Assembly: GCA_026770705.1 (NCBI GenBank)
Contig: JANJGN010000021.1
Location: 80,724,001 to 80,788,000, forward strand
DNA: 64,000 nt
Origin: Isurus oxyrinchus
Taxonomy: Eukaryota
Reading direction: 5' to 3'
The notes below the pieces were generated by a model. It saw nothing but the letters and a program-made list of their open reading frames with translations, was not told the DNA's origin and did no database searches. Below are positions 45,001-54,000 of the stretch, one piece after another (within the stretch, counting starts at the first letter, position 1; every line of letters starts with the position of its first letter). Made by a program: the position numbers and the translations under genes.

Positions 45001-48000
45001 GAATCCCATGTACTAAAATGTAATTAGTTTGACTGGTTGGTGAGCAAGTGTGATTAGGGCATTAATTGTAAACCCAATGTAGAGTCCAACAAAAATATCT
45101 CAACATCTTAATTAAATCAAAAGTTGACTTTCACAGATGAGTAGAAGTGGTTCATTGTGTAATCTTCAGCAATGAATCTCTGCTCAGTGTTGAACTTATC
45201 CAGTCATGGGTTCTGCAGAAAATATATGTAGAATAATACCATGAAAACCAACATCATGCTAGCTGCACTATGTGTCTGTTACATTTCTCTGTCCTGCATA
45301 TTCTTTATACTTTGAATTTTGTGGTTTAGATTATTCTCATTGGTGAGTTTTTCACTCAGTTAGGTACTCCAGACCACCTTCAGCAGTAATGAAATCTAGA
45401 GCAGCCCAGAAAAGTGAGCAACTAGATTTATGTAATGCTGCCCCCTGTTTCTGAGAAGCAGACTATCACACCAAACCCTGTTTTAGGCTTTAACTGTGAA
45501 CAAGTTAATTGAAAATTTGATGAACAAGTGATCCTTATATATAATATATTCTAACTTGCATGGCGTTTCCCACAGTAAGTCAGTGAATATAATATCTTCT
45601 TTACCTTTGATGTCTCTGTGTTCTTTCTCTGGCCTTCTTTTGCCCCCCTCTCTTTCTTATTGCCTGCTTTCTCCTTAATTCTTCTTGCTTCCTCCACTCT
45701 CATGTTTTCTTGTTTTCTCTTTCTCTCTCTCTCTCACTCTCTGTACACCACCAACAACTTTGTGGTTACGCAGCATATATGGCCATTGGTCCCTTCTCCT
45801 CCACCAAGGACTCAGCCTTTTCCCCACTCCTTTCTTTTCTCTGACCGTGTTCTGAGAAAATCAAAGTGTGATGTCACAGGGAAACAGGTAAGTGATTGGT
45901 TGGTGAGTATCTTTTTTTCATTATCTTCTGAAACTCAGGTAATTTATTCATAATTGATAGCTTTTATTGGTAGCAGTAAGGTTTACTTGCAGTAATAAAG
46001 CTTATTAGTAGTAGCCTTTATCAAATAAATTAATTGAGAGAAAAATAAATGGCACAAAGATTGGCCGGGTGGTTAACAGTGAGGTTGAGTGTCTTGGGCT
46101 ACAGGAAGATATAGACGGGATGGTCAAATGGGCAGATAAGTGGCAGATGGAATTTAACCCTGAAAAGTGTGAGGTGATTCACTTTGGAAGGAGTGTTACC
46201 TGGCAGGGGAGAGACCTTCATCGCGTTTCTGCCAGGGAAAGAGAAATGGCTATAACCAGTTGAACTCCTTACCATGGGGTACCTAACACTATCCGAGTCA
46301 TGGTGAAGGGCAGCGAGCAAGGAACAGGAATAGATAGGACCTTCTTCACCAAGAGGATCCTATTCAAGCTGTGTGGTTTCGAGGCTGCGGAGATCTACTG
46401 CCTACAGGATTTCCCCAGTGCTGGATTTTTTGATGTGACTTTCATGCAAGTGGCAGCTTGTGTCAAACTCCTGAAGGTGTTTGAGGAAAAGAAAGACCTG
46501 CCAGAAATGAAGATCCTGACGGCGGAGCCGCTCTGTGCTCTGCCGTTGCAACGAGACTGGGTTGCGACGGTGCATCTTTACAACCCCTTCATCCCTGTCG
46601 CTGATGTGCTCACCTTCCTTACCAGGTACTTCGATAAGGTTGGGAGCTGCACTGTGGTTAGAGATGATTTGGGGATCTGGACATGTAAACGCCAGGTTAA
46701 GGTAACGCTCAAGACCGATGGTAAGGAAGCCGTCTTCCACCCCCCCTTCCAGATTTGCTATCGGGGGAAGCCGTGGCTACCTTGTCTACGCTGGGCAACC
46801 CAAACTTTGTCGCTCATGCAGCAAGTCTGGTCATGTGGCGGCCAACTGCAGCGCCTGTCCTCTGCAAGAACTGCAAACAGGAAGGGCACCAGACAAAAGA
46901 TTGTAAACAGGCTAAGTGCTGCAACCTGTGTGGCGAGGCAAGTCACCTCTACAAGACCTGCCCCAAACGTTGCCGTACTAATGCACAGGCAGCCAAAGCC
47001 AACGAGGGGGAAGCAGAAGAAATGCCTCGTGTCACTCCAACCACCAAGGCCCCCAGGGAGAACAACGGGACAAAGGAGGACACAGAGAGAGACAAGGTGG
47101 AGGAAAAGATTGGGGCAACAGACAGCCAATCAACAGCACTGCCCCCTGAACCTCCCACTCCTCAGGAGAGGGAATCAATGGAGGAGGAGGAGGCAGCAGT
47201 GGGAAAGCAGCAGGGTGAGTGGCAGCTGGTGAAGAGAGCCAAAAGGATGAAGGGGCTAAGAAGAAACCAAGCCACTTCCCAGACAAGAGTCAAGAGACGT
47301 CTCCTATCCGACACGGATAACAAGAGCAGCAGCTCTTCGGACGAAGAAGGGCCAGGGCGGCGCCAACAGAAGAAGCGGCAAAACGCTAGGGAGTTGGAGG
47401 AAGAGACACCCGAGCTCCAGAACATTGGAGATAATGAAGAGACCAGCGCAGCCCAACTTTGCCCACAACCCGAAGAGGCCAGTGTACCACAGCCCCAGGA
47501 ATCTGGGAACAGTGAGGCACTCAGCGCACCCCAGCTCCGGGAAGCTGGGAGCAGCAACGCCCCAGAGGGAGAGAGGATTGGAGAAGCTTCTCAAACAGAG
47601 GACATTTCAAACCCCGCTCTCTGCACAGACCCCCAGATGCCACCCGAGCAGAACATCTCCAATGGGGAGGTTCAGGATGCTTTCCTCAGCCCATCCAAAG
47701 TGAAGCAATTTGAGCACACCACGGGCATGAAGGATCTCTCAGAGACAACAGGTTTGGTAAGCGACTAACTGCTTTAAAATGGGTGTAAGGATTGTATCCA
47801 TAAATGTGCGTAGCAATAAATCTACTACGCAATGTGTTGTGACCTTGGATTACCTTGCCAAGGTCAAAGCTGACCTGTTGTTTCTGCAGGAGTGTGCGAT
47901 ACCGCACCTCAGCTCCTACAGGCAATGGTCACGATGGTGGTCCCATGGGCCATCGATCTGGTCGGGAGGAAACGACTCTCGTTCCTCCGGCCTGGGTATT

Positions 48001-51000
48001 CTGCTGCGGGGAGGCAGCTTCACCATCTCCCAGGTTAAGGAGGTGGTGGGCGGGTGCCTCCTCATAGCAGACGTAATATACAAGAATGCTCCACTCCAGT
48101 TAATTAACGTCTACGCCCCGTCACAAGGTGCTGAGCGGCTGGAGGTTTTTCAGCGGCTCCCACTGCTGCTGGCGACCTCCAGGCCGGTCATTCTGGGCGG
48201 TGACTTCAACTGCATCATCGATGCGGCTGGACAATCCGGCAGGGCCGACAGCAGATTGGACGTTACGTCCAGGTCCCTGATGGAAACAGTTAAGGATGCC
48301 AAGCTGCATGATGTCTTCAGCAACCCTGCAGACGGAGCGCAGCGTAGATACACCTGGTCGCGGCCTGACGGGTCCATCTGTTCCAGGATAGATTTCCTGT
48401 TTGTGTCCCGTGCATTCACAGTCAGATCCACCGATGTCAAGCCGGTGTTCTTCTCTGACCACTGCCTCCTACTGGCTGACTGTCACTTAGAGGAAGACCA
48501 GAGGGTTGGCAGGGGGGTATGAAAGCTAAACATGAAACTGCTGACCCCAGAGAACATTGAGGAGCTCAAGAGGGATTACAAAGGTTGGAGAACCATGAAA
48601 CTCCACTTTGAATCACTGACACACTGGTGGGAAGTGATCAAGGGAAACATCAAGAGGTTTTTCATCCTCAAAGGCACAGAAAGCTAGAAAGGAACAGAGG
48701 GAAATGTCCCGACTCCAGAAAAACATGCAGAATCTGCTCCGGCTGCAGTCGATGGGGCTCGATATCAAGGAGGAGCTCCAAGAGGTGAAGAGCCAGCAAG
48801 CCTCACTCTTTGCCTCGGAGGCCTCCAAGATCATCTTCCGTTCCAGAGCCCGCTCCATGGAGCAGGACGAGACACGCTCATGTTTCTTCTTCCAAAAGGT
48901 ACACAGAGAGAGCTCTGTGATCAGCAGCCTGAAGGAAGAAGCTAGCTCAGTAAAGTCATTACAGTCCGACATTTTGAGGATCAGCAAATCCTTTTATGCC
49001 GGATTGTATGACGTGAAGCCCACAGACAGCACGGCCTCCCAGTCCTTCCTGTCCTCTATCACGGAGGTCTTAGATGACAGTACACGGGAGAGTCTGGACA
49101 AAGCGCTAACTCCTGATGAACTGACTAAGGCCCTTGAGTCCTTCGAGAAGAGTAAAACTCCCGGAAGTGACGGCTTGCCGGTGGAGTTGTATTTGGCTCT
49201 GTGGGACTGGATCGGCCCAGACCTGCTAGAAGTGTACGAGAGTATGCTCCTGGCCGGCATTATGTCAGAATCCATGAGGAAAGGCTTTATCACCCTCATC
49301 TACAAGCACAAGGGGGAAACGGAGGAAATTAGAAATTGGCGACCCATTTCACTGTTGAATGTGCATTATAAGATTCTGTCCAAGGTCATCGCCAATCGGG
49401 TCAAATCCGCTCTGGAATTGGTGATCCACCCTGACCAGACCTGCACTGTGCCGGGCAGGAAGATCTCTGACAGCCTCGTGCTGCTCAGTGATACGATTGC
49501 CTATGTACAGGACAGGGATGTGGATACCTGCCTCATCAGCCTGGATCAGGAGAAGGCCTTTGACAGAATATCGCACACCTATATGGTGGATGTGCTCTCC
49601 AAAATGGGGTTTGGGGAGGGAATTCGCAATTGGATCCAACTGCTCTACACTAACATCAGTAGTGCAGTCTCAGTCAATGGGTGGGAATCAGATAGCTTTC
49701 CTATTAAATCTGGAGTCAGGCAGGGCTGTCCTCTCTCGCCTGTTCTTTTCGTGTGTTGCACAGAACCCATTGCTGAGTCCATCAGGAAGGATCCGGGCAT
49801 AAGAGGAGTGACGATCCCAGGCAGTGGAGGCACTCAGATCAAAGCCTCACTGTACATGGACGATGTCACCGTCTTCTGCTCGGATCTGCTGTCGGTGCGC
49901 AGACTGACCCACATCTGCGACCAGTTCGAACTGGCTTCGGGAGCCAAGGTAAATCGTGGGAAGAGCGAGGCCATGTTCGTTGGGAACTGGGCTGACTGAT
50001 CCTTTGTCCCCTTCACTGTCAGGGCTGATGGCCTGAAGGTGCTGGGGATATGGTTCGGAGGGACCAGGGCATGCATTAGAAACTGGAAGGAGCGAGTGTC
50101 TATGGTGAAAAGGAAACTGGGCATGTGGGAGCGACGCTCCCTCTCTATTGTGGGTAAGAACCTGGTCATCAGGTGTGAGGCACTCTCGCTGTTGCTGCAG
50201 GTCTGGCCCATTCCACACTCCAGTGTGGTGGCGATCACCCGAGCCATCTTCCACTTTATCTGGAGGTCGAAAATGGATCGTGTCCGCAGAGATGCGATGT
50301 ACAAGCCTCTAGATAAAGGGGGAAAAACCGTGCCCAACGTCGCCCTCATACTGATGGCCACCTTTGTGTGCGGCTGCATCAAGCGGTGCGTAGACCCTCA
50401 GTATGCAAACACCAAGTGTCACTACATGCTGAGGTTCTACCTGTCCCCAGTGTTACGAAGGATGGGTCTGGCCACGCTGCCGCAGAACGGTCCAAGTAGT
50501 TGGACCGTGCCACACCACCTGTCCCTCGTGGGAAAATTTATGCAGAGAAACACCTTTGACCACAAGTCCATCAGGCAGTGGTCGGCACGTAACGTCTTAA
50601 AGGCCCTGAGGGAAAAGGAGAGGGTGGATCCTGTGGGATTGTTCCCTGAGCAGTCTGACAAAGTCATTTGGCAGAATGCCTCATCGCCAGAACTTTCTAA
50701 CAAGCACCAAGATGTAGCTTGGCTGGTGGTGAGAAAGGCCCTCCCTGTCAGATCCTTCCTACACGCCAGGAGTCTCACCCCCTCTGCACGTTGCCCTCGA
50801 GGTGGCTGTGATGGGGAAGAGACCGTTGTTCACCTCCTTGTAGATTGTGTCTTTGCAAAGAAGGTCTGGAGAGAGATGCAGTGGTTTCTGTCGCGTTTCG
50901 TCCCGAGCAGTTCTGTGACACAGGACTCTGTGCTCTACGGGCTGTTCCCAGGTACACACACCGAGACAAACATCAACTGCAGCTGGAGGATCATCAACTC

Positions 51001-54000
51001 GGTGAAAGACGCTCTTTGGTCTGCCCGAAACTTGTTGGTTTTCCAGCGCAAAGAGTTGTCCCCGACCGAGTGTTGCAGACTGGCACATTCCAAAGTCCAG
51101 GACTACGTGCTGAAGGACACAGTTAAGCTTGGGGCAGCCGCCACAAAGGCTCAATGGGGAAGGGTCGCTGCCTAAGACCTTTCTGCCACAGTGCACTGAG
51201 GGACTGGGAACTGTAAAGAGTTCCTCAGGCTGTACAGCTTAAAATGAATGTCTGCCAATGATTGTAATATTCATTGTTTGTACTGATACACCTTGTGATT
51301 CATGTTGTAAAAGTTGAACCTGATTGTAGTTTTGTAATGGTGATTTTGAAATGGTTCAAAATGTTTTTGAAGATTTAAGAATAAAGTATATTTTTGCAAA
51401 AAAAAAGATACACTTTGGAAGCAGTAATTTGACAAGGAAGCATTCAGTGAACGGCATGGCACCAGGAAGTTCTGGGGAACAAAGGGACCTTGGCATGTGT
51501 GTCCATAGATCTCTGAAGGCAGAGGGGCATGTTAGTGGGGTGGTGCAAAAGGCATATGGGACACTTGCCTTTATCAATCGAGGCATAGATTACAAAAGTA
51601 GGGAGGTCATGTTGGAGTTGTATAGAACCTTGTGGGTGCCACAGCTGGAGTGCTGTGTGCAGTTCTGGTCACCACATTATAGGAATAATGTGATTGAACC
51701 GGAGGTGGTGCAGAGGGGATTCGCCAGGATATTGCCTGGGATGAAACATTTAAGTAATGAAGAGAGGTTGGATAGACTTGGGTTGTTTTCATTGGAGCAG
51801 AGAAGACTGAGGGGCGACCTGATCGAGGTGTACAAGATTATGAGGGACATGGACAGGGTAAATAAGGAGCAGCTGTTCCCCTTAGTTGAAGGGTCAGTCA
51901 CAAGTGGACACAAGTTCAAGGTGAGGGGCAGGAGGTTTAGGGAGGATGTGAGGAAAAATGTTTTTACCTAGAGGATGATGATGGCCTGGAATGCGCTGCC
52001 TGGGAGGGTGTTGGAGGTGGGTTGCCTCACATCCTTTAGAAAGTACCTGGATGAGCACTTGGCATGTCATAACATTCAAGACTATAGGCCAAGTGCTGGT
52101 AAATGGGATTAGGTAGGTAGGTCAGGTTTTGTCAAGTGTCGGTGCAGACTTGATGGGCCGAAGGGCCTCTTCTGCACTGTGTGATTCTGTGAATTAGCAT
52201 GTAATAAGGATGGGCAGGTGATGTGTTGCGGCTGCAGGTTCCATCAAGGTATTCAAAAGTGAAAAAAAACAAAAACAGAATTACCTGGAAAAACTCAGCA
52301 GGTCCGGCAGCATCAGCGGAGAAGAAAAGAGTTGACGTTTCGAGTCCTCATGACCCTTCGACAGAACTTGAGTTCGAATCCAAGAAAGAGTTGAAATATA
52401 AGCTGGTTTAAGGTGTGTTTGTGGGGGGCGGAGAGATAGAGAGAGAGAGAGAGGTTGGGGGGGGTGTGTGGTTGTGTGGACAAACAAGCAGTGATAGAAG
52501 CAGATCATCAAAAGATGTCAACGACAGTGGTACAATAGAACACATAGGTGTTAAAGTTAAAGTTGGTGATATTATCTAAACGAATGTGCTAATTAAGAAT
52601 GGATGGTAGGGCACTCAAGGTATAGCTCTAGTGGGGTTTTTTTTTATATAATGGAAATAGGTGGGAAAAGGAAAATCTTTATAATTTATTGGAAAAAAAA
52701 GGAAGGGGGAAACAGAAAGGGGGTGGGGATGGGGAGGGAGCTCACGACCTAAAGTTGTTGAATTCAATATTCAGTCCGGAAGGTGCCTAGTCGGAAGATG
52801 AGGTGTTGTTCCTCCAGTTTGCGTTGGGCTTCACTGGAACAATGCAGCAAGCCAAGGACAGACATGTGGGCAAGAGAGCAGGGTGGAGTGTTAAAATGGC
52901 AAGCGACAGGGAGGTTTGGGTCATTCTTGCGGACAGACCGCAGGTGTTCTGCAAAGCGGTCGCCCAGTTTACGTTTGGTCTCTCGAATGTAGAGGAGACC
53001 ACATTGGGAGCAACGAATGCAGTAGACTAAGTTGGGGGAAATGCAAGTGAAATGCTGCTTCACTTGAAAGGAGTGTTTGGGCCCTTGGACGGTGAGGAGA
53101 GAGGAAGTGAAGGGGCAGGTGTTACATCTTTTGCGTGGGCATGGGGTGGTGCCATAGGAGGGGGTTGAGGAGTAGGGGGTGATGGAGGAGTGGACCAGGG
53201 TGTCCCGGAGGGAGCGATCCCTACGGAATGCCGATAAGGGGGCATTCCCTCCAGCAGCACCGCCGTACCCTTTTTCAAAGCTGCGCGTGCCCCCAGTTTC
53301 ATTTTATCCTTCGGCTCATCCGACGCCTCAACAAGAAACTTTTTCTCTTTCTCTCAAGTGCTAAGGAACACAAGCTCCAACAACTCATCAACACCAACAC
53401 CCAACTAGGACCCTCCACCCCTACCTGTCCCTCCGTCCCCACCCTTTCTTCCAATCCCAACCCCAGCCGTGTATTCACTATACCCCCTGACCTTCCCCTC
53501 TCCGATGCTGAACATTCAGTGCTCAGCAAAGGACTTAGTTTCATACCCTTACGCCCTCACCTCAATGAATTTCGGGCTCGGCATGATACTGAACTCTTCT
53601 TCCGCCGTCTTCGTTTCCGGGCTCACTTCTTTGGGCAGGAGTCCTCTCCCAGTTCAACAGATCCTTTTACCCATCTCCAATATTCTCCCTCCACCTGGAC
53701 CCCACCCTCTGGATTCTTACCTTCTCTTGATCTTTTCATTGAGAACTGACGGCGCGACATTAGTTGTCTCAATTTCTCTGCTCCTCTCACCCATTCTAAC
53801 CTGTCTCTCTCTGAACTTACTGCACTCCATTTTCTCAGGTCCAACCCTGACATTGTCATCAAACCCGCTGACAAGTGTGGTGCTGTTGTTGTCTGGCGCA
53901 CTGACCTCTACCTCGCGGAGGCTGAGCGTCAACTCGCAGACACTTCCTCCTACCTCTCCCTGGACCATGACCCCACCACTGAACATCAAGCCATTGTTTC

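Follow-up and report, generated by a model that had tools for sequence, protein, structure and literature searches.

Why a retrotransposon in the genome of the shark Isurus oxyrinchus should begin with letters that read like a spliceosomal RNA is the question raised by a 64 kb stretch of contig JANJGN010000021.1 (GCA_026770705.1, positions 80,724,001 to 80,788,000; the whole of this stretch is called the window, positions are counted from its first letter, and features lie on the + strand unless marked otherwise). At 46195–51406 (+) the window holds a 5.2 kb Tx1-type long interspersed nuclear element (LINE) inserted within a CR1/L2-like LINE, and the first bases of this Tx1 element, after a single extra G, resemble the 5' part of U1 small nuclear RNA (snRNA). 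We consider it likely that this is a dead, structurally complete copy belonging to a dispersed shark Tx1-type LINE family, and that the 5' end of the family itself is a heritable fossil of U1 snRNA.

The U1-derived head (46196–46225) aligns to vertebrate U1 nucleotides (nt) 5–34 at 26 of 30 positions, with the first 17 nt exact and mismatches at U1 nt 22, 26, 28 and 32. The U1 letters were taken from PMC8833184, and all U1 and U2 comparisons used short printed stretches (24–42 nt). An earlier note on this DNA had described the same match, and our alignment reproduces it. The head 17-mer occurred once in the 64 kb window and in none of 100 shuffles, and the local alignment between head and U1 scored 40, where the window background had a mean of 11.4 (standard deviation 2.2) and the next best alignment reached 22.

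To see the head in other copies, the region 45950–46850 was placed on Logan contigs at 85% likeness, in runs including X1 (organism A) and X2 (organism B), both shark; summed contig depth is noisy and gives no copy number, and variants and loose ends are those among the rows listed, beyond which the output has 32 more variant rows and 482 more loose-end rows. In run X2 the head bins 46198–46228 and 46229–46259 had depths of 67k and 68k, compared with 60k and 40k at the start of open reading frame 1 (ORF1), and in run X16, which is possibly RNA, the two head bins stood at 68 and 48 versus 99–200. The majority letter at 46244, within the leader, was found in 14 contigs in X1 and in 41 contigs in X2. 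None of the variants listed carried the U1-type letter at any of the four diagnostic positions (46213, 46217, 46219 and 46223), and this depth therefore does not come from true U1 genes. Because the head has multi-copy depth, because 14–41 contigs run over the leader and because the same head recurs in a gene model of the basking shark, Cetorhinus maximus (see below), the head is multi-copy and heritable, on the support of contigs and gene models, and a chimera confined to a single locus is excluded. The proposal of the earlier note, that this is a LINE family of autonomous-type architecture with a stable U1 head, is borne out by the same three observations.

The earlier note had also set a single template-switch chimera against a family as the choice to be made. 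Chimeras in which a reverse transcriptase (RT) switches from element RNA to U1 snRNA during one insertion have well-known counterparts in the U6/U1/U2-LINE template-switch products (cited in PMC4494074), but such a one-off event is contradicted here by the multi-copy head, with its 14–41 contigs over the leader and a depth equal to that of the body in X2. It also sits badly with the four differences from U1 in a copy which is otherwise only a few percent from its family, and with the same head in the basking-shark relative, and we give it very little credence.

Other searches for copies and relatives returned nothing further: the window compared with itself by blastn held no second copy of the element or of its head, a metagenome scan gave 0 matches to the head 21-mer, an ORF1 search of metagenome and genome contigs found no relatives, and a shorter ORF1 query found no proteins. 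In two X2 contigs the head breaks off at 46216 and ORF1 sequence from 46372 follows, without the 155 nt in between; either a headed element has lost this internal piece, or the head was joined a second time, to a body truncated at its 5' end. Run X20, an RNA run from a coral metagenome, holds 22% of the sampled words of 46100–47000.

The only close proteins recovered were two models from C. maximus. One of them, P0001 (XP_078387188.1), is 70% identical over the ORF1 N-terminus and has no start codon, the model reading upstream as ..FS-SLLGLLANIKC-C-RGDTM-V-LPRQGRD-GRP-ITNRNP.. instead. Here LPRQGRD is the head found in the window (VTWQGRD in the window) with one extra base after TTACCT, and, like the window, it has at U1 nt 22 a G that is foreign to U1 (the true sequence would be read as R-Y). 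Directly before it, RGDTM is true U1 nt 13–27 in frame 2, and further upstream SLLGLLANIKC is the counterpart of SLLGLLAKIKC, the frame 2 reading of U2 nt 2–34. Residues 29–56 of P0001 accordingly show U2 nt 2–34, U1 nt 13–27 and the diverged U1 head stacked directly upstream of a Tx1 ORF1, and comparison of the two leaders suggests that the same diverged head is probably present in this second shark species. Among 150 ORF1 representatives, peptides from the head and U1 frames (QGRD, RGDTM and others) were found at the ORF1 N-terminus of P0001 only, U2-derived peptides were confined to P0001 and P0061, and a query with the N-terminus of P0001 recovered nothing but P0001. The second of these U2 carriers, P0061/P0152 (ENA, 26-kb contig), is a distant Tx1-type ORF1 model with LSLLGLLAKIKC, equal to U2 nt 2–34, at residues 53–64 upstream of ORF1, and is probably a copy in a U2 gene of the type of Keno, the U2-inserting Tx1-clade LINE. 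The U2 pieces of both P0001 and P0061 end near the insertion site of Keno and Utopia (nt 38/39; downstream U2 starts at nt 39).

This stack bears on where the family truly begins. LINE copies are commonly 5'-truncated, and the window copy might have been slightly shortened from a family 5' end lying further upstream, at U1 nt 1–4 or in stacked snRNA pieces, as the additional snRNA-derived sequence upstream of the head in P0001 would allow; ends before 46196 may also lie among the 482 loose-end rows beyond those listed. The head of P0001 also starts at TTACCT, however, and is preceded by a codon which is not that of U1 (V, not Y); the G at the junction in the window fits a copy of the 5' end of a capped RNA, and no high-agreement loose end at 46195/46196 was present among the rows listed. 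A longer original 5' end is on these grounds improbable.

How far the likeness to U1 extends beyond the head was judged from the 73 nt that begin with it. The alignment TTTC--CCAGGG pairs 46226–46237 (TTTCTGCCAGGG) with U1 nt 42–52 if a 2-nt insertion is allowed, and by itself falls short of significance (p = 0.066). Further on, 46248–46268 matches U1 nt 56–74 at 17 of 19 positions with two 1-nt gaps. The three U1-like blocks are collinear and similar in total length, U1 nt 5–74 being 70 nt and the corresponding stretch of the element 73 nt, and the head can for this reason be read as U1 nt 5 to ~74; U1 likeness thus probably extends about that far, in diverged form and with ~7 nt of stem-loop I missing. 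On this extended reading, U1 would probably be the source of all 51 nt of the leader, of the ORF1 start codon (ATG 46246) and of the codons just after it. The remainder of the leader behind the 30-nt head is 46226–46245.

The extended alignment also changes how the folding of the leader is seen. The arms 46196–46206 and 46229–46239 pair at 10 of 11 positions, as the earlier note had it, and RNAfold supports a fold, predicting a 5' hairpin at 46199–46236 (arms 46199–46209 and 46226–46236) of −19.9 kcal/mol (z = −2.77), as good as which none of 200 shuffles folded. The second strand had been taken as non-U1 and the hairpin as evolved for that reason, an argument now weakened, as that strand can be aligned to U1 nt 42–52 and is followed by the significant block at nt 56–74. 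In the simplest reading, the predicted hairpin would be what is left of U1 stem-loop I after its collapse, and not a new structure. In back-reading of the gene model, the basking-shark copy (P0001) seems to lack 27 nt which include the second strand of the hairpin. As a separate observation, the summed depth in run X1 climbs 5–13 fold at 46260–46290, where the U1-like stretch ends.

Several results weigh against a U1-derived, family-wide head. The Rfam U1 model (RF00003), a search which the earlier note had proposed, gave no significant match: at the gathering score or at E ≤ 10 nothing was found in the whole window or in stretches of 901, 161, 43 and 73 nt, and when given exactly 46196–46225 the model aligned its positions 5–34 with 5.2 bits and E = 6.4, where the gathering score is 69.5. 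This model covers all eukaryotes, has a degenerate stem-loop I and penalises fragments, and only a 5' fragment of U1 is present here; the model is uninformative for this head, and the case rests on the comparison with vertebrate U1. A chance resemblance, with no snRNA derivation at all, would draw on the same low Rfam score, but it leaves an exact 17-nt match at the very first bases of the element, seen in 0 of 100 shuffles, a score of 40 against a maximum of 22 elsewhere in the window, and further collinear blocks behind the head, and we find it scarcely credible. In run X1 the head bins reached depths of 21k and 52k versus 264k and 328k at the start of ORF1, a 5–13× lower value; depth is noisy, and in organism A it may be that only a subfamily carries the head, most members having another 5' end. 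All that is seen of other copies consists of contig depth and letters and of protein models, and the leader of P0001 is the back-reading of a gene model, not DNA. Finally, the block at U1 nt 56–74, with p ~0.002–0.003 against 18,272 window tiles, was spotted by eye before testing, and a rough correction for ~6 segments brings it to p ~0.02.

The coding plan identifies the kind of element that carries the head. ORF1 (46246–47768) has two ZCCHC3-type RNA-binding domains (RBD_ZCCHC3_1st, 6e-15; RBD_ZCCHC3_2nd, 2e-17) and CCHC knuckles, the zf-CCHC match of 20.1 bits being slightly below the cut-off of 20.8 and the knuckles being clear in homologues. ORF2 (47779–51175) encodes an AP (apurinic/apyrimidinic)-type endonuclease (Exo_endo_phos, 3.1e-16), a reverse transcriptase (RVT_1, 1.4e-35) and a zf-RVT domain (8.7e-11); the protein atlas gave generic RVT_1 clusters only for its RT. 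The 3' untranslated region (51176–51406) has an AATAAA signal at 51380–51385 and a 9-nt poly(A) at 51398–51406. With this order of ORFs and domains, its poly(A) and its target-site duplication (TSD), from which the Tx1 label is taken, the element is assigned to the Tx1/L1-type plan.

Both reading frames are broken. ORF1 has an in-frame TGA at 46261–46263 and a frameshift near 46740–46760; the frame of ORF2 shifts between 48522 and 48704 and meets a stop at ~49997–49999. Because each ORF thus holds a stop and a frameshift, the copy at 46195–51406 is dead, yet it is structurally complete. The description "full-length Tx1" of the earlier note accordingly stands for the structure and fails for the coding capacity, the TGA at 46261 following shortly after the ATG. 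Most other copies in the Logan contigs differ from the window at letter 46261, and the TGA is therefore private to the window copy. The ATG at 46246 is in frame with the ORF1 core, and the homologue P0153 from Chiloscyllium punctatum starts MASAATRRPGQGIRNTVRV.. (MA..), its M being as far from the conserved NT(I/V)RV motif as this ATG is. Since the stop is private and the Chiloscyllium start lies at this matching distance, ATG 46246, which had been placed correctly at 20 nt past the U1 block, is taken by homology as the ORF1 start, with a predicted leader of 51 nt. The 90% cluster that contains C. punctatum Tx1 ORF1 proteins also contains P0154 (MBB6707171.1, 93 aa), labelled 'Proteus mirabilis', which is probably shark DNA contaminating a bacterial assembly.

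The borders of the insertion are well defined. The left TSD, 19 bp, occupies 46176–46194 (GATTCACTTTGGAAGGAGT) and the right one 51407–51425 (GATACACTTTGGAAGCAGT), the two being identical at 17 of 19 positions. Between the left TSD and the head stands one extra G (46195), as had been noted before and as rechecking of the coordinates confirmed; it has no counterpart in the empty-site form, the first letters of the element being (G)TTACCTGG, and may have been added without a template, stem from the cap or be the base with which the RNA began. Upstream, the host CR1/L2-like LINE covers 46043–46194 (RT region, recognised by translation and of very high repeat depth), and it resumes at 51426–51971, to the end of its RT-C region, a stretch that agrees with the loose-end consensus at 46194; the frame of the host LINE spans the insertion (..EVIHFGRS | NLTRK..). 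The empty site is itself visible: in host-LINE contigs from three Logan runs the match reaches 46194 and is followed by AATTTGACAAGG.., which in the window comes after the right TSD. The borders of the insertion thus do not depend on the TSD for their placement. The host LINE fragment (46043–46194, 51407–51971) is among the most abundant sequences of the runs, with a summed contig depth 10–100× that of the Tx1 family. Further downstream, an ORF at 52764–53063 (−) has a GIY-YIG-like motif resembling that of the Penelope-like element endonuclease.

The copy at 46195–51406 represents a single insertion into a very abundant CR1/L2-like LINE; it lies outside any U1 gene, both its flanks being one such LINE, and its head begins at U1 nt 5, not nt 1. 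Compared with U1 nt 20–57 and U2 nt 22–60, the rebuilt empty site scored no better than chance, 54–78% of random tiles scoring as well. A likeness of the target to U1 stem-loop I (TGATCAC..GAAGG) or to the Keno site in U2 (AAGTGT), seen by eye, was rejected, as it was no better than that of random tiles.

These observations bear on a different account of the head, in which the shark Tx1 lineage homes to U1 snRNA genes as Keno homes to U2 and is driven by the U1 promoter. The head would then be the upstream half of the target, transcribed along with the element, and scattered U1-headed copies such as the off-target one in the window would be escaped co-transcripts. P0001 speaks for this, as its head is immediately preceded by what looks like true U1 (RGDTM), with U2 nt 2–34 further up, ending near the Keno/Utopia site, and so does the 51-nt leader, which leaves scant space for an internal promoter. 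The window copy, however, lies in a CR1/L2-like LINE at a target unlike U1 nt 20–57 or U2 nt 22–60, and the head begins at U1 nt 5 and not at the U1 start site, also when back-read in the basking shark. Moreover, the head has four non-U1 letters, one of them common to both species, with no renewal from fresh U1 genes; U1 likeness runs past nt 34, so that nt 34 is no clean target boundary; and the depth of the head resembles that of the element body, not that of a small gene family. We therefore regard present-day homing as unlikely, and as possible for the past of the lineage or for sister families. If it were true, the shark element would be the first U1-homing Tx1 and the first LINE known to target U1, and the U2-U1-U1' leader of the basking shark would be the record of successive stays in snRNA genes, not of template switches.

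Returning to the heritable U1 fossil as the likely reading, the window copy would stem from a polyadenylated RNA whose 5' end lay at UUACCUGG or one base ahead of it. This RNA would have been copied into the target by ordinary target-primed reverse transcription, with a first nick at 46175|46176 and another 19 bp further downstream. The head would go back to one ancient capture by an ancestor, master copies then passing it on through their RNA. Because it is diverged and because one diagnostic letter is common to both species, we take it as inherited through element RNA and not renewed from U1 genes. As to the capture itself, it is about an even call, by analogy with what has been proposed for crocodilian SINEU and Tx1-Mar elements, whether the Tx1 reverse transcriptase switched template from a 5'-truncated element RNA to U1 snRNA; that an ancestor had entered a U1 gene and the head was read out from it, akin to the master copy under a U1 promoter that the earlier note had proposed, is a tentative alternative. 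Since the promoter of a U1 gene precedes the gene itself, the head is not expected to have promoter activity, and transcription would come from flanking promoters or from a putative internal promoter.

An snRNA head on a Tx1 element has precedents in crocodilians, where three autonomous Tx1-Mar families, which cluster with Keno, have U1-originated heads (Tx1-2_Crp, Tx1-2B_Crp and Tx1-4_AMi; Kojima 2015, PMC4494074). Like the shark element, these have an autonomous-type Tx1 plan and a 3'-truncated U1-derived 5' end common to the family, and both insert into other transposons. The shark element differs in its host and in its target, a CR1/L2-like LINE and not Mariner-N4_AMi, and its U1-derived stretch seems to supply the ORF1 start codon; the two are likened here by design. 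The earlier note had suggested that such a family was novel, which does not hold for its kind, the design being already known from PMC4494074, and does hold for sharks: our literature search found no description of a U1-headed Tx1 in sharks, so the host group is new, as is, as far as we found, U1-derived sequence as the start of ORF1. The latter would be a minor but uncommon instance in which a coding region has taken up snRNA sequence.

The same study describes SINEU-1/2/3, crocodilian short interspersed nuclear elements (SINEs) with U1/U2 heads that are mobilised by Tx1-Mar and were undetected outside crocodilians; it favours template switching for the 5' additions of SINEU, whose transcription it leaves unexplained because U1/U2 promoters are external (PMC4494074). 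SINEU and the shark element are both poly(A) retroposons that begin with snRNA-derived sequence and rely on Tx1 machinery to move, and they pose the same question of transcription without a promoter in the head, a question sharpened by a LINE with a promoter-less U1 leader of 51 nt; SINEU elements are short and non-coding, whereas the shark element has the full coding plan of a LINE. Recurrent stacking of U1 and U2 pieces at 5' ends is described in Kojima 2015 (PMC4494074), with similar stacking in the basking-shark relative, and the U2-U1-head stack of P0001 is the shark parallel to the composite U1/U2 heads of SINEU-1. The shark case, probably in two species with ~70% identical ORF1, thus extends snRNA-headed Tx1 elements beyond crocodilians, and suggests an old and recurrent capture of U1/U2 5' pieces in this Tx1 branch, or an RT with special affinity for snRNA. 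For the annotation of shark genomes it is also a warning, as a short U1-like match can belong to the head of a LINE rather than to a U1 pseudogene.

Among transposons that target snRNA genes, Keno and Utopia (U2), Dada-U1 and Dada-U6 were the only ones listed, no LINE targeting U1 genes having been reported up to 2015 and Dada-U1 being a DNA transposon (Kojima and Jurka 2015, PMC4640811). Keno and Utopia, like the shark element, tie the Tx1 clade to spliceosomal snRNA sequence; unlike Keno, the shark copy lies outside snRNA genes, at a target unlike U1 or U2. R2, a co-transcribed site-specific LINE of 28S ribosomal DNA, illustrates a possible route to a target-derived leader without a promoter of its own, but the shark copy has no flanking target gene and its head has diverged from U1. 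The mammalian U6/U1/U2-L1 chimeras resemble the shark element in having an snRNA piece fused to the 5' end of a LINE cDNA, with TSDs; they are, however, single dead-on-arrival events, usually with a 5'-truncated LINE, whereas the shark fusion is inherited by a multi-copy family.

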